Shown: positions 19,940-43,221 of the stretch, in pieces
Numbering within the stretch: the first letter of the stretch is position 1
Layout: each line of letters begins with the position of its first letter
DNA from: Piromyces finnis finn
Taxonomy: Eukaryota; Fungi; Neocallimastigomycota
Length of the DNA: 64,000 bases
NCBI GenBank assembly: GCA_002104945.1
Contig: MCFH01000006.1
Coordinates: forward strand, 620,001-684,000
Direction of reading: 5' to 3'
Made by a program: the position numbers and the translations under genes
Notes under the pieces: model-generated
The model's input: the letters and a program-made list of their open reading frames with translations, nothing else
Told to the model about the DNA's origin: nothing
Database searches by the model: none

Positions 19940-21056
19940 TTATTTAGAATAATATTGTGATTCAACTGCAAAAGAAAGATCTCCACCAAGGAAATCAACA
20001 ATAGCTGGTACTTCTGAATCTTTAAATGTTTTAGCATAGGGAACACGATTTGCAAGCGAATAACTTTTACCATAACATTTATATTCTCCAACTCTAGCTG
20101 TATTTCTATAATCTTCATAACCAGAGAAAGTTTTCCATCCTAGTGAATTTAATCTTAATCCCAAAATTTCCGTTCTGTTATAAATGACATAACAATACTT
20201 TTTCCATAAACGACCTAAATAAAATGTTATTCCTTCATCTGCAACAATTTTTGAATTGAAGAAAAGGAAACCACTTTCTTCAAAGTTACTATCTTCATTT
20301 CCCTTTTTATTATTTTTGATGTCATTAATTTAAAGAATATTTTCAATATATCATAATATTTTATAATTATGAAAGAAATAAAAAAAATAAAATTTAATAG
20401 TTAATTTCATTAATAATTTATATCTTAATCCATTTAAAATTTTAAAAGTAAAATTTAATTTTTTTATAATTACATTGGCTGTAACATATCCTGTTTTTCC
20501 ATCTTTACCAACAACATGAATAATACAATTTTCAAAACCAGCACGACCAAATCCCCAAATAATATCTGTAACTCCACGAATGAAACAATTTCTAAAGTAG
20601 TGTATTCCATGATATGAAAGTAAAGTGTTTCTATGACTTAAAAAATTACAATTATTAAAGAAACATTTATCACCATAAACATAAAGAGCAGGAGCTTGTG
20701 AATTTGGTCCTGGGAAGGGTGCAGTATTTTGAAAGGTAATGTCAAAAGCTTTAAAGTTATTTGCTATAATTCTAACGGTTGCACATTCTGTACTACTACC
20801 AGTTTTGTAATTATTTAAATCACCAACAATAACCACCTTATCTCTATTTTGACCGATTAATGTAACATAATCTTTTTGAATTGTTACTTGTTCCTCGTAT
20901 ATACCATCCTTTATATAAATTATTCTTTCTTCTAAAGCTATCGGAGGTAAATCATTGATAGCATCTTGAATCTAAATAGTATTTAATAAAAAAAAATAAA
21001 TAAAATTGTTTAATTACCTAATACATTTATTATAATTATCATTATTATCATTATTA

Positions 21057-21342: not shown

Positions 21343-22764
21343 AATTGAAATAGAATTACTTTTCAATACTATTTAATTAATTTTTAGGAAATGGATATGA
21401 ATATTTCACTGAACAAATATTAATTATATATTATTTAAAAAAAAAAAAAAAGAAAAAAAAGAAAGAAATTATAATTTGGAAACCTACTAATAATATTATT
21501 TTAAATATATATATTTAAAAAAAAAGTTTTATTTAAACTTTTTGAAAGATTATTTAAAATAAAATAAAAAAAAAAAAAACTTTAATCTTTTATTATTCAA
21601 AAATTTAAATTTTGAGAAAAATTACTATCAAGGTTATAGTTTTTAATCTTAATCTCACATAGCCAAATAATAAATGATATCTAATAATAATTAAGTATAA
21701 ACTTTAATAATATAAAAATATGTAAAGTTTAGTAGTCATTAAAACTATAAAAAGTTTTTTTTTTAAAAAAAATATAAATAGTGAAAAAAATATAATTTAT
21801 TTGAACATTTTTAATTTTATATTATTAAGTTAATAATAAAACCTAATCCTAATGAAAGTTAATTTTTTATAAATTTATAAGTAAATGTGAAAATAAAATT
21901 TAAAACAATATATTTTTATATTGTAAATTTATGGAAGATTCAAATTATTAGTTATTTAATTACTTATACATTTGTTAATAAAATAAAAAAGAAATAATGT
22001 ATAAATAATATTAATTTAATAGCATTTAAATTAGAAAGCAAATAAATAAAAAAATAACACTTTTATTGTTCTAGGCTTTTATAATTTGTATTGTTAAAAG
22101 TATACATAATTTTTAATAATCTTTATAGATTTTTTTCTTTTTATTTTCATAAGAAATTATAGGAATTAAGTCTTATTCACACCATTATTATTTTTACCCT
22201 TTTTTAAATAAAATAATTAATAAATTTTTTATTTTTAAAGTTATGTTAACTCTTGATAAAGCATGTAAATTAATATTAATATCATTAAAGAATGTATTAA
22301 AGTTTTATTCATATACGTTTTGATACTAAGACTCATGTTCGAAATTAATTAGATTATTTATTTACATTCATATTTCATATATTTCTATTTTAATTCTTAT
22401 AATAGAATAAATTTCTTAATTGTATATTTTTATATTTAATTTTATTATTTACTTAATTTAATACAACATAAAAACATTTTATTTCAGTAAATTATATTAG
22501 TAAAATTTTATTTACTTCCCTAATTTTTTTTATTTATATTATATAAATATTTATTATATTTAAACAATCTTTTTTTTATTTTTATTTTTTAGTTTTTTAT
22601 TATTTTTATATAAAAATATTATAATATTATTTATTATAATATTAAACAACTACATTTTATAGCTAATATTAAAATAATAACATATGTTTATATACAATTA
22701 ATTTAAAACAATTAAATTTATAATATTTAGTTTAAATTTTAAATACTTTTTGAAATATTTTTAT

Positions 22765-23709
22765 CTAGTTAGTTTCAACGATAGTTGGTAAAGTCTTAGT
22801 AGTTTTAATTATAGGTAAAGTTTTAGTAGTTGGAACAACTGGTGCAATTGGTACTTCAGGAGCTTCAGGAGCTTCTGGTAATGATTTTGGAGCAGATGTT
22901 TCTGGAGTAATTGGAGCTTCTGGAGCTTCTGGTAATGACTTTGGAGCTGGTGTTTCTGGAGTAATTGGAGCTTCTGGAGCTTCTGGTAATGACTTTGGAG
23001 CTGGTGTTTCAGGTAATGATTTTGGGGCTGGAGTTTCAGCATCTTCTTCACCAGCTAAAACACTATTTGTTGGTAAAGCCTTAGCTGGTAAGGTTTTAGT
23101 AGATTGAACAATTGGAACTTCTGGACCTACTGGTTCTTGTAATGACTTTGGTGATTGTGTTTCTGGTATAGATTTTGGAGCTGGTGTTTCAAGTAATGAT
23201 TTTGGAGAAGGAGTTTCTGGAATTGACTTTGGAGCAGCTATTTCATCATCTTCTTCAGCAATTAAATTATTCGTAACAGTTGGTAAAGTTTTAGAATGTA
23301 AAGTTTTAGAATGTAAAGTCTTAGTAGTTGGGACTACTGGTGCTATTGGAGCTTCTAGAGTTTCTGATAAAGTCTTTGGAGCTGGAGTTTCTGGAACAAC
23401 TAGTTTATTCAATGATTTTGGAGCTGGTGTTTCTGAAACAATTGGTTCTTTTAATGATTTTGGAGCTGGTGTTTCTGGAACAACTGGTACTTCTGGAACA
23501 ACAGTAGTTTCTGGTAAAACTTTTGGTGGTAAAGTTTTAGTAGATGGAACTACTGGTGCAATTGGTTCAACTGGTTCAATTGGTAAAATAGGTTCAACTG
23601 GTTCAACTGGTGCAATTCCAACTTGAGTTGGTTCTTCATCAGAAATTGGTAAACCAATAGCATTTAAAGATAAAGAAAGAACAATACCGAAAACAAGAGA
23701 GAAACGCAT
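22765..23709 (-). CDS. Secreted Pro/Thr/Glu/Lys-rich repeat protein, copy G1 (314 aa)
   Basis: Intronless ORF with signal peptide MRFSLVFGIVLSLSLNAIG, PAPKS(L/I)PE and TKTLP repeats, and no Cys or Trp. Confidence 0.9.
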   Translation of the reverse strand: MRFSLVFGIVLSLSLNAIGLPISDEEPTQVGIAPVEPVEPILPIEPVEPIAPVVPSTKTLPPKVLPETTVVPEVPVVPETPAPKSLKEPIVSETPAPKSLNKLVVPETPAPKTLSETLEAPIAPVVPTTKTLHSKTLHSKTLPTVTNNLIAEEDDEIAAPKSIPETPSPKSLLETPAPKSIPETQSPKSLQEPVGPEVPIVQSTKTLPAKALPTNSVLAGEEDAETPAPKSLPETPAPKSLPEAPEAPITPETPAPKSLPEAPEAPITPETSAPKSLPEAPEAPEVPIAPVVPTTKTLPIIKTTKTLPTIVETN

Positions 23710-24271
23710 TTTGAAATATTTGTAATAAGTTTACTTTTTAAATTTAGAATTATTTATTTATTATTCTTTTTATTTTTTTATTTTTATAAAAGAATATTAT
23801 TATTATTAAATACAAATTGTATTATAATTATTAAAAAAAAAAGGAAAGGAATTTTACCCTATTTATATTTTTTTTAATAAATATTAATATATTAATAAAT
23901 AATAATTAATTTTAATAATATTTTAATTTTAATAATATATTTTAATAATGAATAATATTAAAACAATTTATTATATATGATTATAATTGAAACCAATTAT
24001 TTATTCATTTCTAATAACAAATATCATAAAATAGGATAAAAAAAAGGAGAATATTTTTATTATGAAAGAAGTAATAATATCATATTAACATGATTTAATA
24101 TAAAAATATAATAATAATTAAAATTTGTAATTATGATATTAATAAATACAAAGAATGAAAATCAATGATAGTAACAAACTTTAAAAATATTTAAAATGAA
24201 TTTTGAACCAATTTTGAATGATAAACGTAACACAATAATATCATAAGGAATATTTTAAATATTTTTGAAAA
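22765..24271 (-). repeat. Inverted-repeat arm (gene plus about 0.56 kb upstream), pairing with 25250-26794
   Basis: 23710-24271 is the near-exact reverse complement of 25250-25813. The same arm recurs at all seven intact copies. Confidence 0.9.
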
Positions 24272-25249
24272 ATAGTAATAAATGTTAATTAGTGATAAAT
24301 GTTACACTCGAATTATTAAAATTCCTTTTTTTTTTCATTTTTTAAAATAATAAAAAATAGCCTTTTACATTTTAAATAAAATTATAATAAAGAACTTTAT
24401 TTAAATTAATAGAAAATTAAATTTTATTGCTTTTTTAATAGTAAAATAATAACTTTTGGAAAAAATAAGTGAAAAAAACTTTATTATTTAATTTCATTAA
24501 TAATTATTGACTAAATAAAAGTGTATTTTTTCTTAATAAGTCATTAATATATTATAAAATGAGAAATATAATTGAAATGATATTTTATTATTATAATTAT
24601 ATTTATATTATAAAAAAAAATAAATTATTAAAAAATTTAAGAAAATTAATATTGAAATAATTAAAAGAAAACAATTAAGAATTAATATTTACAAAAATTC
24701 CAAAATGAAATATTCAATTTTGTAAGAAATATTGATAGAAATAAAAAAATATTATTAATAATTTTTAAAAAAAATCTTTGAAAAATACCAAAATAATTTT
24801 ATCAAATGAAAAAAAAATAATATTGTAAGAACGATATTATTATAATTTAGTATTCTGTCTAATAGTTTTAACTAATAACATTTACATTTGTAAAATTATT
24901 ATATAGTTACAATAAATGTATGTATATATAAAATATATAATATTGGTATACCTAAACAAACAATTATCCTAATTTTCTAACCTTTGAATTATAAATAAAG
25001 AAAGATATTAATAAAGTAATTTTGCCTATCTTTTGAATATAAATACATATAGAGTCATATATAGTATTAAATAAAATAACAATAAATTATAAAGGGTTAG
25101 ATAATAAAAATAAATAAAAATACCATCTTTATTCTTAAAAATTGTTTCAAAGTTATTAAATAAGTATTTTTAATAATCAATAGAATTTGTTTTGAACAAA
25201 TCTTTCCTTTCTATATTTATTTTTATTATAAAAAGCAATTTAATATACT
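24272..25249 (+). repeat. Divergent spacer S1 (forward orientation, X end to Y end)
   Basis: Begins ATAGTAATAAATGTTAATTAGTGATAAATGTTACACTCG (X) and ends ...ATCTTTCCTTTCTATATT...AAAAGCAATTTAATATACT (Y). Reverse-complement homologs lie at about 30450-31415 and 36069-37221. Confidence 0.85.
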
Positions 25250-25813
25250 TTTTTCAAAAATATTTTAAAATATTTCTTATGATATTATTGTGTTACGTTT
25301 ATCATTTAAAATTGGTTCAAAATTCATTTTAAATATTTTTAAAGTTTGTTACTATCATTGATTTTCATTCTTTGTATTTATTAATATCATAATTACAAAT
25401 TTTAATTATTATTATATTTTTATATTAAATCATGTTAATATGATATTATTACTTCTTTCATAATAAAAATATTCTCCTTTTTTTTATCCTATTTTATGAT
25501 ATTTGTTATTAGAAATGAATAAATAATTGGTTTCAATTATAATCATATATAATAAATTGTTTTAATATTATTCATTATTAAAATATATTATTAAAATTAA
25601 AATATTATTAAAATTAATTATTATTTATTAATATATTAATATTTATTAAAAAAAATATAAATAGGGTAAAATTCCTTTTCTTTTTTTTTTAATAATTATA
25701 ATACAATTTGTATTTAATAATAATAATATTCTTTTATAAAAATAAAAAAATAAAAAGAATAATAAATAAATAATTCTAAATTTAAAAAGTAAACTTATTA
25801 CAAATATTTCAAA
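25250..25813 (+). promoter_or_regulatory. Conserved upstream (putative promoter) arm of G2, shared by all copies
   Basis: About 560 bp is retained upstream of each copy (partly deleted at G4). A TATAAATA box lies about 158 bp before the ATG (25656-25663), which is weak evidence in such AT-rich DNA. Confidence 0.45.
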
Positions 25814-26794
25814 ATGCGTTTCTCTCTTGTTTTCGGTATTGTTCTTTCTTTATCTTTAAATGCTATTGGTTTACCAATTTCTGATGAAGAACCAATTCAA
25901 GTTGGAATTGCACCAGTTGAACCAGTTGAACCTATTTTACCAATTGAACCAGTTGAACCAATTGCACCAGTAGTTCCATCTACTAAAACTTTACCACCAA
26001 AAGTTTTACCAGAAACTACTGTTGTTCCAGAAGTACCAGTTGTTCCAGAAACACCAGCTCCAAAATCATTAAATAAACCAGTAGCACCAGAAACACCAGC
26101 TCCAAAGTCTTTATCAGAAGCTCCTGAAGTTCCAATAGCACCAGCTGCTCCATCTACTAAAACATTACATTCTAAAACTTTACATTCTAAAACTTTACCA
26201 ACTGTTACGAATAATTTAATTGCTGAAGAAGAAGATGAAATAGCTGCTCCAAAGTCAATTCCAGAAACTCCTTCTCCAAAATCATTACTTGAAACACCAG
26301 CTCCAAAATCTATACCAGAAGCTCTAGAAGTATCAGTTGCTCCAGAAGCACCAGCTCCAAAAGCCATACCAGAAAAACCAGCTCCAAAGTCATTAAAAGA
26401 ACCAGTAGGTCCAGAAGTTCCAATTGTTCAATCTACTAAAACCTTACCAGCTAAGTCTTTACCAACAAATAGTGTTTTAGCTGGTGAAGAAGATGCTGAA
26501 ACTCCAGCCCCAAAATCATTACCTGAAACATCAGCTCCAAAGTCATTACCAGAAACTCCAGAAGCTCCAATTACTCCAGAAACATCAGCTCCAAAAGCCG
26601 TACCAGAAGCTCCAGAAGTACCAATTACTCCAGAAACTCCTGCTCCAAAGTCATTACCAGAAGCTCCGGAAGCTCCTGAAGTACCAATTGCTCCAGTTAT
26701 TCCAACTACTAAAACTATTGTTATTCAAACTACTAAAACTTTACCTATCATTAAAACTACTAAGACCTTACCAACTATCATTGAAACTAACTAG
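25814..26794 (+). CDS. Secreted repeat protein, copy G2 (326 aa)
   Basis: Intact paralog of G1 with the same signal peptide and the C-terminus TKTLPTIIETN. Confidence 0.9.
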   Translation: MRFSLVFGIVLSLSLNAIGLPISDEEPIQVGIAPVEPVEPILPIEPVEPIAPVVPSTKTLPPKVLPETTVVPEVPVVPETPAPKSLNKPVAPETPAPKSLSEAPEVPIAPAAPSTKTLHSKTLHSKTLPTVTNNLIAEEEDEIAAPKSIPETPSPKSLLETPAPKSIPEALEVSVAPEAPAPKAIPEKPAPKSLKEPVGPEVPIVQSTKTLPAKSLPTNSVLAGEEDAETPAPKSLPETSAPKSLPETPEAPITPETSAPKAVPEAPEVPITPETPAPKSLPEAPEAPEVPIAPVIPTTKTIVIQTTKTLPIIKTTKTLPTIIETN

Positions 26795-27897
26795 ATAAAA
26801 CTATTTTATAATTTTATATTAGATTAAAATTAAAATTAACAGTTATAAGATTAATTTTAAATCTTATAGTATAATTTAGAAATTTCGAATTAATTGTATA
26901 AATAGAATTTTTTTTAATGTATAGAAATTTTTTTCTTAATTTTATAAAATAAAACTTAAAATGTGTAATAAATTCCTTAATTTTTTAATAAAATAAAATA
27001 TAATAAAATATAAATAATATTAATTTATATTAATATTTATAAAATTTATATTTCTTGTTTATTTCTAAATTGTTTTGTGTTAATAAGTATGAATTTTGAC
27101 AAAATAAATAGAAAATAATGTAATAAATTATAAAATAATATGATTACGAAAAAACTACGATTAGCAATAACAATATTTATATATTTTTAAACTACTTTTT
27201 AATCTAATTATATTTTAGAATTTTTGAAATATTTTCTGATTGACTTAAATTATAAATAACTGATATTCTTATAGTATAATTAAATGTATTCTTAATTATA
27301 CATAATTATTAAATATTATTTAAATTTGATGAAAAAATCATGAATATTCAATAATTTTTGAAATATAATTATATATATATTATTTTATATATCCTATATA
27401 TAAATATTTTGTTATAAACACTCGAAATATCCATATTGCTTAATTAGTTTATTTTGTCTGTTCTAGTTAACAATATCCATTAAAAATCCTATATTATTAT
27501 TCAGTGTTAGATAATATTAATTAAACTTAAAAACATTTTTCAATATGATATTTTTATGTATTCTTAAAAAGTTATTTTATTCTATTTAAGAAATATAAAA
27601 AAATAACATCAAATTAAAATATGCTTAGTTTAAGTAGAGAGATTAACTGTGTAGGAATTCAAATATAACTAAAAAAAATTTAAATATTAATTGGAATTCT
27701 ATTTTACTATATTTTACTTTATTTATTATACTTACATACTATTAAAAAATAAAAGAACTTCATAAATATTTTTTAATTTTTATTTGTAATATATTATATA
27801 TACTTAACTTTAAAAAATTGATTGTATATTTTAATTCATACTTTAATTTTTTGTAGCTTTTTGAAATACTTTTTATTTAGTTAGTTTTATTGATAGT

Positions 27898-28173
27898 TTA
27901 TAAGGTCTTAGTGGTTTTAATGAAAATAATAGTTTGAACAATTGGAGCTTCTAGAGTTTCAGATAAAAATTTTGGAGCTGGTCTTTCTGGAACAACTGAG
28001 ATTTCTGGAATAATAATAAATTCTGGTAGAGCTATTGATGGTAAAATTTTAGTAGATGGAACAATTGGTTCAATTCCAACTTGAGATTGTTCTTCATCAG
28101 AAATTAGAAAACTAATAACTATAACATTTAAAAATAAATAAAGAGTATTACCGAGAAGGAGAAAGAAATTCAT
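27898..28173 (-). pseudogene. Degenerate, shortened paralog of the secreted repeat gene (91 aa)
   Basis: MNFFLLLGNTLYLFLNVIVISFLISDEEQSQVGIEPIVPSTKILP...PERPAPKFLSETLEAPI...KTTKTL*. The CCA codon of KTLP has become TAA, with the remnant ACTATCAATAAAACTAACTAA following. Large internal deletions are present. Confidence 0.75.
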
Positions 28174-28636
28174 TTTGATATATTTAAATATTAATACGTT
28201 AATACTGTCTAAATTTAAATGGTTTAATTATTATACTTTATATTTTTATATAATATTATTTTTATCATTCAAGTTATAAATTCTACTATAATTATTGAAA
28301 AAAGAATATTTTACTTTATTTATCTTTTTTTTTTAATAAATATTAACATATTGGAATATATTATTTATTATGATATAATTGATAGAAATTTTGAAGTAGT
28401 GAAAATATTTGAAAATTCTTGAATTAAATTATAATCAATTAAAATAATTTCCTCTACTAATTTCTAAATTAATAAATTTAAGAAAATTAGATTTTCATAA
28501 TAACACATTGCAAACTTTACTGGACACATTATAGACCATGCATTTTTAAAAAAATAAAGTCATTGTAGATAATAATTTAATTCCTCACTTTTAAAGAAAT
28601 AAAAGCTATTTTAAAAACAAAAAAATTAAGCTTATT

Positions 28637-28760
<124 letters not shown>

Positions 28761-29042
28761 TAAAATTAATTATAATATTATATTTTTTATATTTTTTACA
28801 TTTACTTTATTATATTTAATTTTATTATATTTTTGAATATAAAAAAAAGTCCTTTACATATTTTTTCTAATTTTTATTAATTAAAAGACTGAAATATTTA
28901 TTTTACATAAATAAAAAAAAATAAATATTTACATTTAATTTAAAATTATTAAATCTAAAATTTTAATAACTAATTTTATAATTATTAATTCATAATTTTT
29001 AATTTTTCATATTTTTTTAATGAAATAATGAAATGCTTGCAT

Positions 29043-29888
29043 CTAGTTAGTTTCAATGATAGTTGGTAAGGTCTTAGTAGTTTTAATGACAGGTAAAGTT
29101 TTAGTAGTTTGAATAACAATAGTTTTAGTAGTTGGAATAACTGGAGCAATTGGTACTTCAGGAGTTTCTGGAACTTCTAGAGCTTCTGGTAATGACTTTG
29201 GAGCTGGTGTTTCTGGAGTAATTGGAGCTTCTGGAGCTTCTGGTAATGATTTTGGAGCTGGTGTTTCAGATAATGATTTTGGGGCTGGAGTTTCAGCATC
29301 TTCTTCACCAGCTAAAACATTATTTGTTGGTAAAGACTTAGCTGGTAAGGTTTTAGTAGATTGAAAAATTGGAACTTCTGGACCTATTGGTTCTTTTAAT
29401 GATTTTGGGGCTGGTTTTTCTGGTATAGATTTTGGAGCTGGTGTTTCAAGTAATGATTTTGGAGATAGAGTTTCTGGAATTGACTTTGGAACAGCTATTT
29501 CATCTTCTTCTTCAGCAATTAAATTATTCGTAACAGTTGGTAAAGTTTTAGAATGTAAAGTTTTAGAATGTAATGTTTTAGTAGATGGAACAACTGGTGC
29601 TATTGGAACTTCAGGAGCTTCTGATAAAGACTTTGGAGCTGGTGTTTCTGGTGCTACTGGTTTATTTAATGATTTTGGAGCTGGTGTTTCTGGAACAATT
29701 GGTACTTCTGGAACAACAGTAGTTTCTGGTAAAGCTTTTGGTGGTAAAGTTTTAGTAGATGGAACTACTGGTGCAATTGGTTCAACTGGTGTAATTCCAA
29801 CTTGAATTGGTTCTTCATCAGAAATTGGTAAACCAATAACATTTAAAGATAAAGAAAGAACAATACCGAAAACAAGAGAGAAACGCAT
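29043..29888 (-). CDS. Secreted repeat protein, copy G3 (281 aa)
   Basis: Intact paralog with a Y-type upstream spacer end and a D2-type 3' flank. Confidence 0.9.
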   Translation of the reverse strand: MRFSLVFGIVLSLSLNVIGLPISDEEPIQVGITPVEPIAPVVPSTKTLPPKALPETTVVPEVPIVPETPAPKSLNKPVAPETPAPKSLSEAPEVPIAPVVPSTKTLHSKTLHSKTLPTVTNNLIAEEEDEIAVPKSIPETLSPKSLLETPAPKSIPEKPAPKSLKEPIGPEVPIFQSTKTLPAKSLPTNNVLAGEEDAETPAPKSLSETPAPKSLPEAPEAPITPETPAPKSLPEALEVPETPEVPIAPVIPTTKTIVIQTTKTLPVIKTTKTLPTIIETN

Positions 29889-30449
29889 TTTGAAATATTT
29901 GTAATAAGTTTACTTTTTAAATTTAGAATTATTTATTTATTATTCTTTTTATTTTTTATTTTTATATAAGAGTATTATTATTATTATATACAAATTGTAT
30001 TATAATTATTAAAAAAAAAAGAAAAGGAATTTTACCCTATTTATATTTTTTTAATAAATATTAATATATTAATAAATAATTATTTGTTTTAATAATATTT
30101 TAATTTTAATAATATATTTTAATAATGAATAATATTAAAACAATTTATTATATATGATTATAATTGAAACCAATTATTTATTCATTTCTAATAACAAATA
30201 TCATAAAATAGGATAAAAAAAAGGAGAATATTTTTATTATGAAAGAAGTAATAATATCATATTAACATGATTTAATATAAAAATATAATAATAATTAAAA
30301 TTTGTAATTATGATATTAATAAATACAAAGAATGAAAATCAATGATAGTAACAAACTTTAAAAATATTTAAAATGAATTTTGAACCAATTTTGAATGATA
30401 AACGTAACACAATAATATCATAAGAAATATTTTAAAATATTTTTGAAAA

Positions 30450-31415
30450 AAGTATATTAAATTGCTTTTTATAATAAAAATATATATAGAAAGGAAAGAT
30501 TTGTTCAAAACAAATTCTATTGATTATTAAAAATACTTATTTAATAATTTTGAAACAATTTTTAAGAATAAAGATGGTATTTTTATTTATTTTTATTATC
30601 TAACCCTTTATAATTTATTGTTATTTTATTTAATATTATATATGACTATATATGTATTTATATTCAAAAGATAAGCAAAATTACTTTATTAATATCTTTC
30701 TTTATTTATAATTCAAAGGTTAGAAAATTAGGATAATTGTTTGTTTAGGTATACCAATATTATATATTTTATATATACATACATTTATTGTAACTATATA
30801 ATAATTTTACAAATGTAAATGTAATTAGTTAAAACTATTAGACAGAATACTAAATTATAATAATATCGTTCTTACAATATTTTTTTTTCATTTGATAAAA
30901 TTATTTTGGTATTTTTCAAAGATTTTTTTTAAAAATTATTAATAATATTTTTTTATTTCTATCAATATTTCTTACAAAATTGAATATTTCATTTTGGAAT
31001 TTTTGTAAATATTAATTCTTAATTGTTTTTTTTTTAATTATTTCAATATTAATTTTCTTTAATTTTTTAATAATTATTTATTTTTATAGTATAAATATAA
31101 TTATAATAATAAAATATCATTTCAATTATATTTCTCATTTTATAATAATAATTAATGACTTATTAAGAAAAAATGCACTTTTATTTAGTCAATAATTATT
31201 AATGAAATTAAATAATAAAGTTTTTTTCACTTATTTTTTCCAAAGGTTATTATTTTACTATTAAAAAAGCAATACAATTTAATTTTCTATTAATTTAAAT
31301 AAAGTTCTTTATTATAATTTTATTTAAAATGTAAAAGGCTATTTTTTATTATTTTAAAAAATGAAAAAAAAAAAAGGAATTTTAATAATTCAAGTGTAAC
31401 ATTTATCACTAATTA
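30450..31415 (-). repeat. Divergent spacer S2, inverted relative to S1
   Basis: Starts AGTATATTAAATTGCTTTTATAATAAAAA...GAAAGGAAAGAT (reverse complement of the S1 Y end) and ends ...AATTCAAGTGTAACATTTATCACTAATT (reverse complement of the X end). Confidence 0.85.
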
Positions 31416-31830
31416 TATCACAACTACAAATTTTAATTATTATTATATTTTTATATTAAATCATGTTAATATGATATTATTATTTCTTATTACTTCTTTC
31501 ATAATAAAAATATTCTCCTTTTTTTTATCCTATTTTATGATATTTGTTATTAGAAATGAATAAATAATTGGTTTCAATTATAATCATATATAATAAATTG
31601 TTTTAATATTATTCATTATTAAAATATATTATTAAAATACTATTAATACAATATGTTAATATTTATGAAAAAAATATAAATAGGGCAAAAATTTCTTTTC
31701 TTTTTTTAATTATTATAATACAATTTGCATTTAATAATAATAATACTCTTTTATAAAAATAAAAAAATAAAAAGAATAATAAATAAATAATTCTAAATTT
31801 AAAAAGTAAACTTATTACAAATATTTCAAA

Positions 31831-32715
31831 ATGCGTTTCTCTCTTGTTTTCGGTATTGTTCTTTCTTTATCTTTAAATGTTATTGGTTTACCAATTTCTG
31901 ATGAAGAACCAATTCAAGTTGGAATTACACCAGTTGAACCAATTGCACCAGTAGTTCCATCTACTAAAACTTTACCACCAAAAGCTTTACCAGAAACTAC
32001 TGTTGTTCCAGAAGTACCAATTGTTCCAGAAACACCGGCTCCAAAATCATTAAATAAACCAGTAGCACCAGAAACACCAGCTCCAAAGTCTTTATCAGAA
32101 GCTCCTGAAGTTCCAATAGCACCAGTTGTTCCATCTACTAAAACTTTACATTCTAAAACTTTACCAACTGTTACGAATAATTTAATTGCTGAAGAAGATG
32201 ATGAAAATGCTGCTACAAAATCAATTCCAGAAACTCCTTCTCCAAAATCATTATTTGAAACACCAGCTCCAAAATCTATACCAGAAACACAATCACCAAA
32301 ATCATTACAAGAACCAGTAGGTCCAGAAGCTCCAATTGTTCAATCTACTAAAACCTTACCAGCTAAGTCTTTACCAACAAATAATATTTTAGCTGGTGAA
32401 GAAGATGCTGAAACTGCAGCCCCAAAATCATTATCTGAAACACCAGCTCCAAAGACATTACCAGAAGCTCCAGAAGCTCCAATTACTCCAGAAACACCAG
32501 CTCCAAAAGCCATACCAGAAGCTCCAGAAGCTCCAGAAGTACCAATTACTCCAGAAACACCTGCTCCAAAGTCATTACCAGAAGCTCCAGAAGCTCCTGA
32601 AGTACTAATAGCTCCAGTTATTCCAACTACTAAAACTAATATTATTCAAACTACTAAAACCTTACCTATCATTAAAACTACTAAGACCTTACCAACTATC
32701 ATTGAAACTAACTAG
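31831..32715 (+). CDS. Secreted repeat protein, copy G4 (294 aa)
   Basis: Intact paralog with X-type upstream and D2-type 3' flank. Confidence 0.9.
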   Translation: MRFSLVFGIVLSLSLNVIGLPISDEEPIQVGITPVEPIAPVVPSTKTLPPKALPETTVVPEVPIVPETPAPKSLNKPVAPETPAPKSLSEAPEVPIAPVVPSTKTLHSKTLPTVTNNLIAEEDDENAATKSIPETPSPKSLFETPAPKSIPETQSPKSLQEPVGPEAPIVQSTKTLPAKSLPTNNILAGEEDAETAAPKSLSETPAPKTLPEAPEAPITPETPAPKAIPEAPEAPEVPITPETPAPKSLPEAPEAPEVLIAPVIPTTKTNIIQTTKTLPIIKTTKTLPTIIETN

Positions 32716-33037
32716 ATACAAGCATTTCATTATTTTATTATTTCATTTAAAAAAATATGAAAAATTAAAAATTATGAATTAATAATTATAAAATTAGTTA
32801 TTAAAATTTTAGATTTAATAATTTTAAATTAAATGTAAATATTTATTTTTTTTATTTATGTAAAATAAATATTTTAGTCTTTTAATTAATAAAAATTAGA
32901 AAAAATATATAAATGACTTTTTTTTATATTCAAAAATATAATAAAATTAAATATAATAAAGTAAATGTAAAAAAAATAAAAAATATAATATTATAATTAA
33001 TTTTAATTTATTAATTTATTTATTTATTTTTGTTGTA

Positions 33038-33105
<68 letters not shown>

Positions 33106-33179
33106 CATTATTATTATCATTATTATTATTATCATTATTATTATTATTATCATTATTATTATCATTATTATTATTATTA

Positions 33180-33248
<69 letters not shown>

Positions 33249-33260
33249 ATTATATATCAA

Positions 33261-33312
<52 letters not shown>
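33038..33312 (+). repeat. (ATT)n/(ATC) interrupted microsatellite in spacer T2
   Basis: Directly visible. Confidence 0.95.
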
Positions 33313-33899
33313 TCTTTTTTAATTTATTTATTAATTTATTATTTATTATGTATTTATTAAAGTGTATTTCTAAATTTCATATTTTTATTCTTTTTGAATT
33401 AGTTTCGTATTTTTAATAAATAAGCTTATTTTTTTTTTAAAATGGCTTTTATTTCTTTTAAAAGTGAGGAATTACATTATTATTTACAATGATTTTTTTT
33501 AATAATATATGGTCTATAATATGTCTAATAAAATTGTAATGAATTATTATAAAAATCTAATTTTCTTTTTAATATTTTAATTTGGAAATTAGTAGAGGTA
33601 ATTATTTTAATTGATTATAACTTAAATCAAAAAATTTTAAATATTTTTCACTGCTTCAAAATTTCTATCAATTATATCATATTAAAATTGCTAAATATTT
33701 TTATTATTTAATAAATAAATATATACCAATATGTTAATATTTATTAAAAAAAAGATATATAGAGTAAAATATTCTTTTTTTTCAATAATCATAGTAGAAT
33801 TTATAACTTGCATAATAAAAATAATATTATGAAAAAATATAAAGTATAATAATTAAACCATTTTTAATTTAAACAGTATTAATATTTAAATATATCAAA

Positions 33900-34136
33900 A
33901 TGAATTACTTTCTCTTTCTCGTTAATACTCTTTATTTATTTTTAAATATTATAGTTATTAGTTTTCTAATTTCTGATGAAGAACAAACTCAAGTTGGAAT
34001 TGCACCAATTGAATCAGTTAAACTAATTGAATTAGTTGAACCAATTATGCCAATTGTTCCACATACTAAAATTTTATCATCAAAAGCTTTAAAAATATTA
34101 AATATATATTATTATATTTCAATCATCAAATTTTAA
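33900..34136 (+). pseudogene. Degenerate, 3'-truncated paralog of the secreted repeat gene (78 aa)
   Basis: MNYFLFLVNTLYLFLNIIVISFLISDEEQTQVGIAPIESVKLIELVEPIMPIVPHTKILSSKAL, then runs into non-homologous AT-rich sequence. Confidence 0.75.
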
Positions 34137-34562
34137 ATAATATTTAATAATTATTTATAATTAAGAATACATTTAATTATGCTATAAGAATATCAGTTAT
34201 TTATAATTTAAGTCAATCAGAAAATATTTCAAAAATTCTAAAATATTAATAGATTAAAAAGTGGTATAATCTAAGATGTGAAAAATATATAAATTTTATT
34301 ATTGATAATCATAATATTTTCCTAACCACATTATTTTATATTATATTTTATTTTACTTTATTTATTTTTATTATATTTTATTTTATTAAAAAACAAAGGA
34401 ATTTCATACACATTTTAAATTTTAATTAGTTATAAAATAACATTAAAAACATTCTATATATATAATTAATTCGAAATTTTTAAATTATACAAAGATTTAT
34501 AATTAATTTTATAATTGTTAATTTTAATTTTAATCTAATATAAAATTATAAAATAGTTTTAT

Positions 34563-35507
34563 CTAGTTAGTTTCAATGATAGTTGGTAAGGTCTTAGTAG
34601 TTTTAATGATAGGTAAGGTTTTAGTAGTTTGAATAACAATAGTTTTAGTAGTTGGAATAACTGGAGCAATTGGTACTTCAGGAGCTTCTGGAGCTTCTGG
34701 TAATGACTTTGGAGCAGGAGTTTCTGGAGTAATTGGAGCTTCTGGAGCTTCTGATAATGACTTTGGAGCTGGTGTTTCTGGAGTAATTGGAGCTTCTGGA
34801 GCTTCTGGTAATGACTTTGGAGCTGGTGTTTCAGGTAATGATTTTGGGGCTGGAGTTTCAGCATCTTCTTCACCAGCTAAAACACTATTTGTTGGTAAAG
34901 ACTTAGCTGGTAAGGTTTTAGTAGATTGAACAATTGGAACTTCTGGACCTACTGGTTCTTTTAATGATTTTGGGGCTGGTGTTTCTGGTATGGCCTTTGG
35001 AGCTGGTGCTTCTGGAGCAACTGATACTTCTAGAGCTTCTGGTATAGATTTTGGAGCTGGTGTTTCAAGTAATGATTTTGGAGAAGGAGTTTCTGGAATT
35101 GACTTTGGACCAGCCATTTCATCATCTTCTTCAGCAATTAAATTATTCGTAACAGTTGGTAAAGTTTTAGAATGTAAAGTTTTAGAATGTAATGTTTTAG
35201 TAGATGGAACAACTGGTGCTATTGGAACTTCAGGAGCTTCTGATAAAGACTTTGGAGCTGGAGTTTCTGGAACAACTGGTTTATTTAATGATTTTGGAGC
35301 CGGTGTTTCTGGAACAATTGGTACTTCTGGAACAACAGTAGTTTCTGGTAAAACTTTTGGTGGTAAAGTTTTAGTAGATGGAACTACTGGTGCAATTGGT
35401 TCAACTGGTGTAATTCCAACTTGAATTGGTTCTTCATCAGAAATTGGTAAACCAATAACATTTAAAGATAAAGAAAGAACAATACCGAAAACAAGAGAGA
35501 AACGCAT
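34563..35507 (-). CDS. Secreted repeat protein, copy G5 (314 aa)
   Basis: Intact paralog with Y-type upstream and D1-type 3' flank. Confidence 0.9.
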   Translation of the reverse strand: MRFSLVFGIVLSLSLNVIGLPISDEEPIQVGITPVEPIAPVVPSTKTLPPKVLPETTVVPEVPIVPETPAPKSLNKPVVPETPAPKSLSEAPEVPIAPVVPSTKTLHSKTLHSKTLPTVTNNLIAEEDDEMAGPKSIPETPSPKSLLETPAPKSIPEALEVSVAPEAPAPKAIPETPAPKSLKEPVGPEVPIVQSTKTLPAKSLPTNSVLAGEEDAETPAPKSLPETPAPKSLPEAPEAPITPETPAPKSLSEAPEAPITPETPAPKSLPEAPEAPEVPIAPVIPTTKTIVIQTTKTLPIIKTTKTLPTIIETN

Positions 35508-36068
35508 TTTGAAATATTTGTAATAATTTTACTTTTTAAATTTAGAATTATTTATTTATTATTCTTTTTATTTTTTATTTTTATAAAAGAATATTATTAT
35601 TATTAAATACAAATTGTATTATAATTATTAAAAAAAAAGAAAAGGAATTTTACCCTATTTATATTTTTTTTAATAAATATTAATATATTAATAAATAATA
35701 ATTAATTTTAATAATATTTTAATTTTAATAATATATTTTAATAATGAATAATATTAAAACAATTTATTATATATGATTATAATTGAAACCAATTATTTAT
35801 TCATTTCTAATAACAAATATCATAAAATAGGATAAAAAAAAGGAGAATATTTTTATTATGAAAGAAGTAATAATATCATATTAACATGATTTAATATAAA
35901 AATATAATAATAATTAAAATTTGTAATTATGATATTAATAAATACAAAGAATGAAAATCAATGATAGTAACAAACTTTAAAAATATTTAAAATGAATTTT
36001 GAACCAATTTTGAATGATAAACGTAACACAATAATATCATAAGAAATATTTTAAAATATTTTTGAAAA

Positions 36069-37221
36069 AAGTATATTAAATTGCTTTTTATAATAAAAAT
36101 ATATATAGAAAGGAAAGATTTGTTCAAAACAAATTCTATTGATTATTAAAAATACTTATTTAATAATTTTGAAACAATTTTTAAGAATAAAGATGGTATT
36201 TTTATGTATTTTTATTATCTAACCCTTTATAATTTATTGTTATTTTATTTAATACTATATATAACTCTATATGTATTTATATTCAAAAGATAGGCAAAAT
36301 TACTTTATTAATATCTTTCTTTATTTATAATTCAAAGGTTAGAAAATTAGGATAATTGTTTGTTTAGGTATACCAATATTATATATTTTATATATACATA
36401 CATTTATTGTAACTATATAATAATTTTACAAATGTAAATATTATTAGCTTACAACAGAATTTACTCGAGAGAATACTAAATTATAATAAAATCATACTTA
36501 TAATACTACTTTTTTTCATTTAATATCAATTACAATTAGTTCATTTTTGTAGTATAATTTTATACATAATAGAACATAATTTTTTACTTTTTTTTTTATA
36601 TCAATTTTTAAATTATATTAATATTTATTTTTATTTAATATAATTGTAATTATTTAAAATGCGTTTTAATCAACAGGTGGTTTATTAATTAAAATATTTA
36701 TAATTTTTTTTGATATTTTTCAAAGATTTTTTAAAATTATTAATAATATTTTTTTATTTCTATTAATATTTCTTACAAAATTAAATATTTTGTTTTAGAA
36801 TTTATGTCAATATTAATTCTTAATTGTTTTTTTTTTAATTATTTCAATATTAATTTTCTAAAATTTTTTAATAATTATTTATTTTTATAGTATAAATATA
36901 ATTATATTTTTCATTTTATAATATATTAATGACTTATTAAGAAAAAATACACTTTTATTTAGTCAATAATTATTAATGAAATTAAATAATAAAGTTTTTT
37001 TCACTTATTTTTTCCAAAAGTTATTATTTTACTATTAAAAAAGCAATACAATTTAATTTTCTATTAATTTAAATAAAGTTCTTTATTATAAAGTTCTTTA
37101 TTATAATTTTATTTAAAATGTAAAAGGCTATTTTTTATTATTTTAAAAAATGAAAAAAAAAAAAAAGGAATTTTAATAATTCAAGTGTAACATTTATCAC
37201 TAATTAACATTTATTACTATT
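36069..37221 (-). repeat. Divergent spacer S3, inverted relative to S1, with a divergent/extra internal segment (about 36440-36710)
   Basis: Y end on the left and X end on the right, as in S2. Confidence 0.85.
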
Positions 37222-37758
37222 TTTCAAAAATATTTAAAATATTTCTTATGATATTATTGTGTTACGTTTATCATTCAAAATTGGTTCAAAATTCATTTTA
37301 AATATTTTTAAAGTTTGTTACTATCATTGATTTTCATTCTTTGTATTTATTAATATCATAATTACAAATTTTAATTATTATTATATTTTTATATTAAATC
37401 ATGTTAATATGATATTATTACTTCTTTCATAATAAAAATATTCCCCTTTTTTTTATCCTATTTTATGATATTTGTTATTAGAAATGAATAAATAATTGGT
37501 TTCAATTATAATCATATATAATAAATTATTTTAATATTATTCGTTATTAAAATATATTATTAAAATACTATTAATACAATATGTTAATATTTATGAAAAA
37601 AATATAAATAGGGCAAAAATTTCTTTTCTTTTTTTAATAATTATAATACAATTTGCATTTAATAATAATAATACTCTTTTATAAAAATAAAAAAATAAAA
37701 AGAATAATAAATAAATAATTCTAAATTTAAAAAATAAACTTATTACAAATATTTCAAA

Positions 37759-38640
37759 ATGCGTTTCTCTCTTGTTTTCGGTATTGTTCTTTCTTTATCT
37801 TTAAATGCTATTGGTTTACCAATTTCTGATGAAGAACCAATTCAAGTTGGAATTACACCAGTTGAACCAATTGCACCAGTAGTTCCATCTACTAAAACGT
37901 TACCACCAAAAGCTTTACCAGAAACTACTGTTGTTCCAGAAGTACCAGTTGTTCCAGAAACACCGGCTCCAAAATCATTAAATAAACCAGTAGCACCAGA
38001 AACACCAGCTCCAAAGTCTTTATCAGAAGCTCCTGAAGTTCCAATAGCACCAGTTGTTCCATCTACTAAAACTTTACATTCTAAAACTTTACATTCTAAA
38101 ACTTTACCAACTGTTACGAATAATTTAATTGCTGAAGAAGAAGATGAAATAGCTGCTCCAAAGTCAATTCCAGAAACTCCTTCTCCAAAATCATTACTTG
38201 AAACACCAGCTCCAAAATCTATACCAGAAGCTCTAGAAGTATCAGTTGCTCCAGAAGCACCAGCTCCAAAGGCCATACCAGAAAAACCAGCCCCAAAATC
38301 ATTACCTGAAACACCAGCTCCAAAGTCATTACCAGAAGCTCCAGAAGCTCCAATTACTTCAGAAACACCAGCTCCAAAAGCCATACCAGAAGCTCCAGAA
38401 GCTCTAGAAGTACCAATTACTCCAGAAACACCTGCTCCAAAGTCATTACCAGAAGTTCCAGAAGTACCAATTAATCCAGAAACACCTGCTCCAAAGTCAT
38501 TACCAGAAGCTCCAGAAGCTCCTGAAGTACCAATTGCTCCAGTTATTCCAACTACTAAAACTATTGTTATTCAAACTACTAAAACTTTACCTATCATTAA
38601 AACTACTAAGACCTTACCAACTATCATTGAAACTAACTAG
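37759..38640 (+). CDS. Secreted repeat protein, copy G6 (293 aa)
   Basis: Intact paralog with X-type upstream and D1-type 3' flank; lacks one 42-aa module. Confidence 0.9.
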   Translation: MRFSLVFGIVLSLSLNAIGLPISDEEPIQVGITPVEPIAPVVPSTKTLPPKALPETTVVPEVPVVPETPAPKSLNKPVAPETPAPKSLSEAPEVPIAPVVPSTKTLHSKTLHSKTLPTVTNNLIAEEEDEIAAPKSIPETPSPKSLLETPAPKSIPEALEVSVAPEAPAPKAIPEKPAPKSLPETPAPKSLPEAPEAPITSETPAPKAIPEAPEALEVPITPETPAPKSLPEVPEVPINPETPAPKSLPEAPEAPEVPIAPVIPTTKTIVIQTTKTLPIIKTTKTLPTIIETN

Positions 38641-39741
38641 ATAAAACTATTTTATAATTTTATATTAGATTAAAATTAAAGTTAACAATTATAAAATTAA
38701 TTTTAAACCTTAGTATAATTTAGTAATTTCGAATTAATTGTATAAATAGAATTTTTTTTAATGTATAGAAATTTTTTTCTTAATTTTATAAAATAAAACT
38801 TAAAATGTGTAATAAATTCCTTAATTTTTTAATAAAATAAAATTTAATAAAATATAAATAATATTAATTTATATTAATATTAATAAAATTTATATTTCTT
38901 GTTTATTTCTAAATTGTTTTGTGTTAATAAGTATGAATTTTGACAAAATAAATAGAAAATAATGCAATAAATTATAAAATAATATGATTAAGAAAAAACT
39001 ACGATTAGCAATAACAATATTTATATATTTTTAAACTACTTTTTAATCTAATTATATTTTAGAATTTTTGAAATATTTTCTGATTGACTTAAATTATAAA
39101 TAACTGATATTCTTATAGCATAATTAAATGTATTCTTAATTATACATAATTATTAAATATTATTTAAATTTGATGAAAAAATCATGAATATTCAATAATT
39201 TTTGAAATATAATTATATATATATTATTTTATATATCCTATATATAAATATTTTGTTATAAACACTCGAAATATCCATATTGCTTAATTAGTTTATTTTG
39301 TCTGTTCTAGTTAACAATATCCATTAAAAATCCTATATTATTATTCAGTGTTAGATAATATTAATTAAACTTAAAAACATTTTTCAATATGATATTTTTA
39401 TGTATTCTTAAAAAGTTATTTTATTCTATTTAAGAAATATAAAAAAATAACATCAAATTAAAATATGTTTAGTTTAAGTAGAGAGATTAACTGTGTTGGA
39501 ATTCAAATATAACTAAAAAAAATTTAAATATTAATTGGAATTCTATTTTACTATATTTTACTTTATTTATTATACTTACATACTATTAAAAAATAAAAGA
39601 ACTTCATAAATATTTTTTAATTTTTATTTGTAATATATTATATATATTTAACTTTAAAAAATTGATTGTATATTTTAATTTATACTTTAATTTTTTGTAG
39701 CTTTTTGAAATACTTTTTATTTAGTTAGTTTTATTGATAGT

Positions 39742-40017
39742 TTATAAGGTCTTAGTGGTTTTAATGAAAATAATAGTTTGAACAATTGGAGCTTCTAGAG
39801 TTTCAGATAAAAATTTTGGAGCTGGTCTTTCTGGAACAACTGAGATTTCTGGAATAATAGTAAATTCTGGTAAAGCTATTGATGGTAAAATTTTAGTAGA
39901 TGGAACAATTGGTTCAATTCCAACTTGAGATTGTTCTTCATCAGAAATTAGAAAACTAATAACTATAACATTTAAAAATAAATAAAGAGTATTACCGAGA
40001 AGGAGAAAGAAATTCAT
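39742..40017 (-). pseudogene. Degenerate paralog (91 aa), near-identical to 27898-28173
   Basis: Translation differs by one residue (EFTII vs EFIII). Confidence 0.75.
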
Positions 40018-40582
40018 TTTGATATATTTAAATATTAATACGTTAATACTGTCTAAATTTAAATGGTTTAATTATTATACTTTATATTTTTATATAATAT
40101 TATTTTTATCATTCAAGTTATAAATTCTACTATAATTATTGAAAAAAGAATATTTTACTTTATTTACCTTTTTTTTTAATAAATATTAACATATTGGAAT
40201 ATATTATTTATTATGATATAATTGATAGAAATTTTGAAGTAGTGAAAATATTTGAAAATTCTTGAATTAAATTATAATCAATTAAAATAATTTCCTCTAC
40301 TAATTTCTAAATTAATAAATTTAAGAAAATTAGATTTTCATAATAACACATTACAAACTTTACTGGACACATTATAGACCATGCATTTTTAAAAAAATAA
40401 AGTCATTGTAGATAATAATTTAATTCCTCACTTTTAAAAGAAATAAAAGCCATTTTAAAAAAAAAATAAGCTTATTTATAAAAAATACAAAACTAATTCA
40501 AAAAGAATAAAAATATGAAATTTAGAAATACACTTTAATAAATACATAATAAATAATAAATTAATAAATAAATTAAAAAAGA

Positions 40583-40763
<181 letters not shown>

Positions 40764-41047
40764 TAAAATTAATTATAATATTATATTTTTTATATTTTTT
40801 ACATTTACTTTATTATATTTAATTTTATTATATTTTTGAATATAAAAAAAAGTCCTTTACATATTTTTTCTAATTTTTATTAATTAAAAGACTGAAATAT
40901 TTATTTTACATAAATAAAAAAAAATAAATATTTACATTTAATTTAAAATTATTAAATCTAAAATTTAAATAACTAATTTTATAATTATTAATTTTTTTAA
41001 TTTTTCATATTTTTTTATGAAATAATGAAATAATGAAATGCTTGTAT

Positions 41048-41992
41048 CTAGTTAGTTTCAATGATAGTTGGTAAGGTCTTAGTAGTTTTAATGACAGGTA
41101 AAGTTTTAGTAGTTTGAATAACAATAGTTTTAGTAGTTGGAACAACTGGAGTAATTAGTACTTCAGGAGCTTCTGGAGCTTCTGGTAATGACTTTGGAGC
41201 TGGTGTTTCTGGAGTAATTGGAGCTTCTGGAGCTTCTGGTAATGACTTTGGAGCTGGTGTTTCTGGAGTAATTGGAGCTTCTGGAGCTTCTGGTAATGAC
41301 TTTGGAGCTGGTGTTTCAGGTAATGATTTTGGGGCTACAGTTTCAGCATCTTCTTCACCAGCTAAAACACTATTTGTTGGTAAAGACTTAGCTGATAAGG
41401 TTTTAGTAGATTGAACAATTGGAGCTTCTGGACCTACTGGTTCTTGTAATGTCTTTGGGGCTGGTTTTTCTGGTATGGCCTTTGGAGCTGGTGCTTCTGG
41501 AGCAACTGATACTTCTGGAGCTTCTGGTATAGATTTTGGAGCTGGTGTTTCAAGTAATGATTTTGGAGAAGGAGTTTCTGGAATTGACTTTGGAACAGCT
41601 ATTTCATCTTCTTCTTCAGCAATTAAATTATTCGTAACAGTTGGTAAAGTTTTAGAATGTAAAGTTTTAGAATGTAAAGTTTTAGTAGATGGAACAACTG
41701 GTGCTATTGGAACTTCAGGAGCTTCTGATAATGATTTTGGAACTGGTGTTTCTGAAACAACTGGTTTATTTAATGATTTTGGAGCTGGCGTTTCTGGAAC
41801 AACTGGTACTTCTGGAACAACAGTAGTTTCTGGTAAAGCTTTTGGTGGTAAAGTTTTAGTAGATGGAACTACTGGTGCAATTGGTTCAACTGGTGTAATT
41901 CCAACTTGAATTGGTTCTTCATCAGAAATTGGTAAACCAATAACATTTAAAGATAAAGAAAGAACAATACCGAAAACAAGAGAGAAACGCAT
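41048..41992 (-). CDS. Secreted repeat protein, copy G7 (314 aa)
   Basis: Intact paralog with X-type upstream and D2-type 3' flank. Confidence 0.9.
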   Translation of the reverse strand: MRFSLVFGIVLSLSLNVIGLPISDEEPIQVGITPVEPIAPVVPSTKTLPPKALPETTVVPEVPVVPETPAPKSLNKPVVSETPVPKSLSEAPEVPIAPVVPSTKTLHSKTLHSKTLPTVTNNLIAEEEDEIAVPKSIPETPSPKSLLETPAPKSIPEAPEVSVAPEAPAPKAIPEKPAPKTLQEPVGPEAPIVQSTKTLSAKSLPTNSVLAGEEDAETVAPKSLPETPAPKSLPEAPEAPITPETPAPKSLPEAPEAPITPETPAPKSLPEAPEAPEVLITPVVPTTKTIVIQTTKTLPVIKTTKTLPTIIETN

Positions 41993-42553
41993 TTTGAAAT
42001 ATTTGTAATAATTTTACTTTTTAAATTTAGAATTATTTATTTATTATTCTTTTTATTTTTTTATTTTTATAAAAGAATATTATTATTATTAAATACAAAT
42101 TGTATTATAATTATTAAAAAAAAAAGAAAAGGAATTTTACCCTATTTATATCTTTTTTAATGAATATTAATATATTAATAAATAATAATTAATTTTAATA
42201 ATATTTTAATTTTAATAATATATTTTAATAATGAATAATATTAAAACAATTTATTATATATGATTATAATTGAAACCAATTATTTATTCATTTCTAATAA
42301 CAAATATCATAAAATAGGATAAAAAAAAGGAGAATATTTTTATTATGAAAGAAGTAATAATATCATATTAACATGATTTAATATAAAAATATAATAATAA
42401 TTAAAATTTGTAATTATGATATTAATAAATACAAAGAATGAAAATCAATGATAGTAACAAACTTTAAAAATATTTAAAATGAATTTTGAACCAATTTTGA
42501 ATGATAAACGTAACACAATAATATCATAAGGAATATTTTAAATATTTTTGAAA

Positions 42554-42818
42554 AATAGTAATAAATGTTAATTAGTGATAAATGTTACACTCGAATTATT
42601 AAAATTCCTTTTTTTTTTTCATTTTTTAAAATAATAAAAAATAGCCTTTTACATTTTAAATAAAATTATAATAAAGAACTTTATAATAAAGAACTTTATT
42701 TAAATTAATAGAAAATTAAATTGTATTGCTTTTTTAATAGTAAAATAATAACTTTTGGAAAAAATAAGTGAAAAAAACTTTATTATTTAATTTCATTAAT
42801 AATTATTGACTAAATAAA
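42554..42818 (+). repeat. Truncated spacer S4 (X end only, forward orientation); right boundary of the array
   Basis: Matches 24272 to about 24520, then homology stops abruptly after AATTATTGACTAAATAAA. Confidence 0.8.
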
Positions 42819-43221
42819 GAGGTTATATTCAATAAAAAGATATTAAAATTAATTAATGATTTACATAAGAACATATATGTAATAATAAATTTAATATTAT
42901 AAGATTTATTATTAAAATGAATATAAATATTAGTTCATTGATCTATTGATATAATATTAAATTTACTAAAATTTTAAAATAATTATAAAGATTTTTAAAT
43001 ATTATCCTTATTTTTGTATAATATCATTATTTTTTTATTTAAGTCTTAGAGTAAGAATTTTTTTTTTTTTTTTTTAATTATCATTTTATGTAAAAAAATA
43101 TATATATAAATTATAAATTTACACTAAAAATAAAAAAGAAAAAGAAAATAATAAGGAAAAATAAATGGTTAAAATTGGTTCTTTTATCAACTTTTTTTTT
43201 ATTTTTATTTTTATTTATTAT

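Follow-up and report, generated by a model that had tools for sequence, protein, structure and literature searches.

A probable past inversion between inverted paralogs, with two intact hybrid genes, in a seven-gene array of Piromyces finnis

Introduction

The int22h inversion of the human F8 gene is an inversion by non-allelic homologous recombination (NAHR) between inverted low-copy repeats. Here we analyze a 64-kb stretch of the genome of the anaerobic gut fungus Piromyces finnis (contig MCFH01000006.1, positions 620,001 to 684,000; referred to below as the window, whose numbering is used throughout unless the contig is named), in which seven paralogous genes, G1 to G7, form an array on alternating strands and a block of about 9 kb between G3 and G6 was probably flipped by this mechanism. 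As in int22h/F8, the breakpoints would lie in kilobase-size inverted homologous repeats, the segment between them would have been flipped, and both reciprocal recombinant repeats would have been retained at its ends. Unlike in int22h/F8, the repeats are intact protein-coding paralogs and both products are hybrid genes of working length; moreover, the event would have occurred inside a larger alternating array, and the uninverted state is here inferred, not observed.

The ampliconic palindromes of the human Y chromosome, which are kept alike by arm-to-arm gene conversion, offer a second comparison. Inverted gene pairs with near-identical arms are likewise present in P. finnis, at a second locus of the family and among the head-to-head neighbors of the array, which are 99 to 100% identical over promoter and 5' coding sequence; unlike those of the Y palindromes, these arms are short (1 to 2 kb) and multicopy, and the conversion tracts are patchy rather than extending over the whole arm. 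Programmed DNA inversion is known from bacterial invertases, shufflons, and the FLP system of the yeast 2-micron plasmid. As in these systems, a segment between inverted repeats would be in a flipped state and flipping would alter which gene parts are joined; in contrast to them, the array has no short specific sites, no site-specific recombinase was seen among the long open reading frames examined, and its repeats are long, diverged genes. A forward-reverse-forward form, finally, is known from rearrangements of the duplication-triplication/inversion-duplication (DUP-TRP/INV-DUP) type (PMC11293582, PMC4352052) and from origin-dependent inverted-repeat amplification (ODIRA) in yeast (PMC10766183). 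The array resembles these in having three related modules that lie forward, reverse, and forward and in the mediating role of inverted repeats, but its copies differ in age (1% versus 10% divergence) and the upstream types at its junctions do not fit.

Results

Spacer orientation and flank classes

In the array, head-to-head spacers (S1 to S4, with the cores C1 to C4) alternate with tail-to-tail spacers (T1 to T3) (Table 1). The orientation of the spacers was determined by self-BLAST and by MAFFT alignment of the spacer cores and of the tail-to-tail spacers; positions 31338-31385, in C2, were masked in the spacer-core alignments and left unmasked in the seven-gene alignment. S1 and the reverse complements of S2 and S3 were collinear across the entire unique core of ~1 kb, and S4 was direct relative to S1, on the X side of the core only. 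T1 and T3 were direct relative to each other, and T2 was alignable only as its reverse complement. Along the array, the string of spacers reads F F R R R F F (F, forward; R, reverse), with phase changes at G3 and G6. An earlier reading of the DNA made from its letters alone (the sequence-only reading) had assigned S1, T1, T3, and S4 to the forward and S2, T2, and S3 to the reverse orientation, and both methods bear this out.

The stretch common to all gene copies runs from ~550 nucleotides (nt) upstream of the ATG to the stop codon (~1.58 kb), and over this shared ~1.6 kb oppositely oriented copies were 93 to 99% identical. Beyond about −550, the distal upstream sequences fell into two classes: class X in G1, G4, G6, and G7 (1 to 3 mismatches in 226 to 281 positions) and class Y in G2, G3, and G5 (4 to 5 mismatches in 293 positions). 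The two classes could not be aligned with each other (about 40% mismatch). Downstream of the genes, class D1 was found at G2, G5, and G6 and class D2 at G3, G4, and G7; the 16-mer motifs of D1 and D2 had exactly 3 occurrences each, at the stop codons of those genes, where chance would give none. The repeats at the ends of the inverted block are reciprocal recombinants in these terms, G3 combining Y with D2 and G6 combining X with D1, whereas the other classifiable copies are either Y/D1 (G2 and G5) or X/D2 (G4 and G7). The sequence-only reading had sorted the six genes in the same way, and the upstream mismatch classes and motif positions agree with it throughout.

Informative sites were counted against one parent of each class. 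In G3, the ratio of G2-like to G7-like sites was 161:3 upstream and 1:81 downstream; in G6, G7-like sites outnumbered G2-like sites 128:12 upstream, and the ratio was 3:77 downstream. A change of parent between the two flanks was seen in G3 and G6 only (Fisher P values from 1e-30 to 1e-60), and the controls G2, G5, G4, and G7 had the same majority parent in both flanks.

The flipped segment has inverted homologous repeats at both ends, G3 on the minus strand and G6 on the plus strand, with ~1.58 kb shared. An inversion with breakpoints in G3 and G6 is the only single event that regularizes F F R R R F F, and it would also yield both hybrid genes. The flank classes alone cannot separate such a block inversion from three separate flips in place, in which S2, T2, and S3 would each have been inverted through its own crossover, or through inverted conversion, between the flanking genes, because both give the same classes. 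Every spacer is flanked by inverted homologous genes and so could be inverted independently of the others; the present flank classes would result with each spacer still in its place, and conversion between inverted neighbors is evident in the array. Three events would be needed, however, versus one for the block inversion, and the order of the spacer types described below also speaks against this alternative.

Two spacer types and the un-inverted order

The spacers are of two types. C1 differed from the reverse complement of C2 at 15 of 907 core positions (98.3% identity) and T1 from T3 at 23 of 2,112 positions outside the microsatellite (98.9% identity); these four are type alpha. Type beta comprises the center of C3, which shared 91% identity with C1 and C2 and has an insertion of ~190 nt, and T2, which was ~90% identical to T1 and T3 and has a deletion of ~680 nt. 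A 15-nt duplication on the X side is common to C3 and C4 and is absent from C1 and C2. As the array now stands, C2 is inverted relative to C1, 6 kb away, and T3 lies 11.85 kb from T1 in direct orientation, so that the alpha copies in their present order cannot have come from one duplication.

When the block from G3 to G6 is un-inverted, the array reads as the units (C1,T1), alpha, (C3,T2), beta, and (C2,T3), alpha, followed by G7 and by C4, which is truncated and has a beta-type X side. C1/C2, T1/T3, and the X sides of C3/C4 then become direct pairs about 12 kb apart (~11.9 kb for the alpha pairs), and G1 pairs with G4, both of which have a 54-nt deletion and linked variants. This order, reconstructed from the alpha and beta markers, would be the picture of a tandem duplication of two units, now 1 to 2% diverged, followed by one block inversion, which on this reconstruction must be younger than the alpha duplication. 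A block inversion would thus explain the order of the spacers as well as their orientation, and the spacer types lend the inversion independent support beyond what the sequence-only reading had to offer. With flips in place, by contrast, the ancestral units would be alpha-alpha, alpha-beta, and beta-alpha, without a common period; the distance between the alpha copies would be 6 kb for C and 12 kb for T, a combination that no single duplication accounts for. We regard three flips in place as unlikely.

Self-alignment of the whole array in the present versus the un-inverted order (8.3 kb at 84.8% versus 8.6 kb at 87.4%) was not discriminating, because BLAST gaps through the 1-kb cores; segments were compared one by one instead.

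The divergence of the spacers bears also on a replicative inverted triplication, in which a single complex event of template switching between inverted copies, of the DUP-TRP/INV-DUP or ODIRA kind, would have produced the modules G2-T1-G3, G4-T2-G5, and G6-T3-G7. The order forward, reverse, forward is indeed that of the three tail-to-tail modules, and inverted repeats are known substrates of such events (PMC4352052, PMC11293582, PMC10766183). Copies made in the same event should be equally diverged, yet T2 (~10%) and the center of C3 (~9%) stand apart from T1/T3 and C1/C2 (1 to 2%). In the ODIRA type, moreover, the forward modules need the same junction, yet G3 has Y and G7 has X upstream. Three switches are required versus one crossover, in agreement with the sequence-only reading, which had named this possibility as an alternative that needs more switches. 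It is the least probable of the explanations that we considered.

The exchange point and the interior of the repeats

Within the shared 1.58 kb, triplet site analysis revealed a patchwork in which informative sites alternate between the parents. Gene conversion has made this stretch a mosaic, which precludes clean mapping of the exchange point. To place it, we used positions with different states in G3 and G6, each state recurring in other copies. The 5' pattern was found at alignment columns 1942 and 2174 and the 3' pattern at column 2534, and columns 1599 and 2025 were in conflict. The best interval, columns 2175-2533 (3 sites for, 2 conflicting), would place the exchange, as a best guess, in the 3' third of the coding sequence (CDS), which is rich in repeats, and the inverted block would then measure about 8.9 to 9.5 kb, a best-interval estimate from very few sites. 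The sequence-only reading had proposed aligning G3 and G6 with the other copies to map the crossover point; the alignment bore out the mosaic flanks but gave no clean switch, and its best interval falls within the 3' third of the CDS, not midway.

Homogenization and promoter sequences

Over ~440 nt before the ATG, only 1 to 9 positions differed among G1, G2, G3, G5, and G7. The head-to-head neighbors G1 and G2 had 1 mismatch in 430 promoter positions and 8 in 309 positions of the 5' CDS, and G3 and G4, also head-to-head, had 1 in 273 positions of the 5' CDS. The shared upstream region (for example, 23710-24277 and 25246-25813) was more alike between copies, including oppositely oriented neighbors, than the coding sequence was. 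This likeness points to ongoing homogenization, and the array copies exchange sequence often, inverted neighbors included. Because the proximal promoters are nearly the same everywhere, the inversion would have swapped mainly distal upstream sequence and, on the other side, the 3' ends of the genes with their flanks, not functional promoters. The proposal that the event swapped 5' and 3' halves and promoters therefore stands for these parts and goes too far for the promoters, whose proximal ~440 to 550 nt are near identical in five of the seven genes. G4 and G6 alone have a private block of ~15 promoter variants at ~100 to 215 nt before the ATG (about 31615-31730 and 37545-37660); conversion between these direct copies would explain it. 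Another feature of G4 is a deletion of 147 nt at about 31415, where the shared promoter meets the X-type distal sequence.

Such exchange raises the possibility of a running recombination switch, in which homologous exchange would still flip blocks measurably in culture, isomers would coexist, and new hybrid genes would arise. The evidence for it is indirect: substrate is present throughout the array, and the copies, inverted ones included, are being homogenized. Set against this, no recombinase gene was seen among the long open reading frames (ORFs) examined in the window: a domain scan of these ORFs returned a cystathionine-synthase-like protein, an M36 peptidase, a pectinesterase, a kinase, and a SPRY domain, as well as a 696-amino-acid (aa) ORF without a family. 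Spontaneous crossover between diverged repeats of 1.6 kb is, in addition, normally rare per generation. A switch of this kind seems to us very unlikely. Somewhat more doubtful still is the idea that the array is a working generator of diversity, with one culture holding several isomers and sets of hybrid secreted proteins; if true, the array would amount to a fungal equivalent of a shufflon that works without a recombinase.

Integrity of the assembly

The assembly comprises 56,455,805 bases in 232 contigs. The signature described above could also arise if the true locus were a regular, un-inverted array and reads had been misjoined through the inverted repeats of ~1.6 kb. A misjoin of this sort would give exactly what is observed, and the region is hard to assemble, the flanks of these repeats being repeated too (T1/T3, 98.9%; C1/C2, 98.3%). 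Against an artifact stand the absence of any gap (N) in the window, the clean, intact ORFs of G3 and G6, and the source data themselves: the source project presumably used long reads, and long reads usually span repeats of 1.6 kb. Searches of the genome DNA for copies of the T and C sequences, which were kept clear of 31338-31385 and its close copy in S1, found no second high-identity copy outside the array in the assembly, so there is no candidate for a collapsed haplotype. We consider an assembly artifact improbable.

Genes, proteins, and surroundings

The ORFs of G1 to G7 are all intact, and every length difference among them is in frame; G6 lacks one internal block that the other copies have. 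They are predicted to be intronless genes for a secreted, disordered, proline-rich repeat protein, with an N terminus that resembles a signal peptide (judged by eye), proline-rich repeats, and a conserved C terminus. A Pfam search of the family gave no match. The Atlas model of the protein was unstructured (predicted local distance difference test [pLDDT] score, 0.34), and its look-alikes in the Atlas were unnamed, with scores below chance level only. No relatives were found in a word-index protein search or in a metagenome scan, and exact-protein look-ups with G3 and G6 returned no match.

Further members of the family occur elsewhere in the same genome. Two paralogs (374 and 331 aa) lie ~380 kb away, at 1037258-1042005 of the same contig, and form a tail-to-tail palindrome whose arms are 98 to 99% complementary around a spacer of 925 nt. 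About 600 nt of this spacer is 75% identical to part of T1. Because of this resemblance, the convergent gene pair with a T-like spacer is probably an old module of the family.

Each T spacer contains a degenerate short copy of the 5' end of the gene (ORFs of 91, 78, and 91 aa), the strand of which tracks the orientation of the spacer. Long microsatellites of the (ATT)n type and of differing lengths are present on the D2 side of every T spacer (28600-28900, 32900-33330, and 40500-40940), that of T2 being broken up by ATC/ATG units. The insertion of ~190 nt in the core center (about 36525-36700) was found in S3 alone.

The G+C content in 2-kb steps was 13 to 31% across the window. The products of neighboring genes were identified by Pfam search as a fungalysin M36 peptidase, a pectinesterase fragment, a protein kinase, and a pyridoxal phosphate (PLP) enzyme with a CBS domain. 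The ORF at 20351-20836 (minus strand), immediately to the left of the array, has only the middle of a pectinesterase domain (profile positions 63 to 181 of 298) and probably represents either a single exon of a split gene or a fragment. Fainter homology continues past the right edge of the array, up to about 42932.

Table 1 Positions of the array, its genes and spacers, and the likely exchange intervals in the window
Feature	Position	Strand or orientation	Description
Whole array	22593..42835		Seven paralogs, strands alternating, with head-to-head (S) and tail-to-tail (T) spacers; from self-BLAST
G1	22765-23709	-	314 aa; upstream class X; own 3' flank at array edge
S1	23710..25813	forward	Core C1 24278-25245, type alpha; X side toward G1, Y side toward G2
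G2	25814-26794	+	326 aa; class Y/D1
T1	26795..29042	forward	Type alpha; degenerate gene copy 27898-28173 (-); (ATT)n tract
G3	29043-29888	-	281 aa; intact ORF; hybrid Y/D2; homology common to all copies, 29043-30424
S2	29889..31830	reverse	Core C2 30455-31414, type alpha, 98.3% identical to reverse complement of C1
G4	31831-32715	+	294 aa; class X/D2
T2	32716..34562	reverse	Type beta; remnant gene copy 33900-34136 (+)
G5	34563-35507	-	314 aa; class Y/D1
S3	35508..37758	reverse	Core C3 36074-37214; center type beta; X side with 15-nt duplication also in S4
G6	37759-38640	+	293 aa; intact ORF; hybrid X/D1; shared homology, 37245-38640
T3	38641..41047	forward	Type alpha, 98.9% identical to T1; degenerate gene copy 39742-40017 (-)
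G7	41048-41992	-	314 aa; class X/D2
S4	41993..42835	forward	Shared promoter and X side of core only, then unique flank
Likely exchange interval in G3	29091-29395	-	Weakly supported
Likely exchange interval in G6	38306-38592	+	Weakly supported

Discussion

We propose, with a probability of roughly 0.68, that the array underwent a past inversion by homologous recombination between inverted paralogs, which left two intact hybrid genes. A duplication of two units (~11.9 kb), whose copies are now 1 to 2% different, would have come first. One reciprocal homologous crossover, an instance of NAHR between inverted repeats, would then have involved the third copy of the array, on the minus strand, and the sixth, on the plus strand. 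This would have flipped ~9 kb, comprising the 5' parts of G3 and G6 together with S2, G4, T2, G5, and S3. In the product G3, Y-type upstream sequence and 5' CDS would be joined to a D2-type 3' end; in the product G6, X-type upstream sequence and 5' CDS would be joined to a D1-type 3' end. We infer a single crossover event, past and fixed, rather than a running switch.

The proposal builds on the sequence-only reading, in which a direct tandem array of ~6 kb had undergone one crossover between the oppositely oriented G3 and G6 that flipped the intervening ~8 to 9 kb. The orientation string, the hybrid flanks, and the alpha/beta order of the spacers support the one crossover, and the block size of ~9 kb (8.9 to 9.5 kb from the best interval) agrees with that estimate. 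A regular array is indeed recovered after un-inversion, but it does not look like a uniform 6-kb one: the last duplication has the appearance of a two-unit step of ~12 kb.

Several points weigh against the inversion as proposed. Reads wrongly joined through inverted repeats would produce the same signature. In S4, the proposed 12-kb duplication is cut short at its right end, which calls for at least one further event. The private promoter block of G4 and G6 is not predicted by the alpha/beta periodicity. Finally, there is no single clean switch in the interior of the repeats, and the points implied by G3 and G6 are in loose agreement only.

The mechanism is a familiar and ordinary one, and the array adds a new and fairly neat case from an anaerobic gut fungus; the locus opens no long-standing question. 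It is a clear example of a rearrangement history that is legible from one sequence: taken together, the flank classes and the two spacer types speak for a two-unit duplication followed by one block inversion, rather than for any of the alternatives that we weighed. As regards the biology of anaerobic gut fungi, the locus indicates that gene families in their very AT-rich genomes are shaped by homologous exchange between inverted copies and that intact hybrid genes can result from it.

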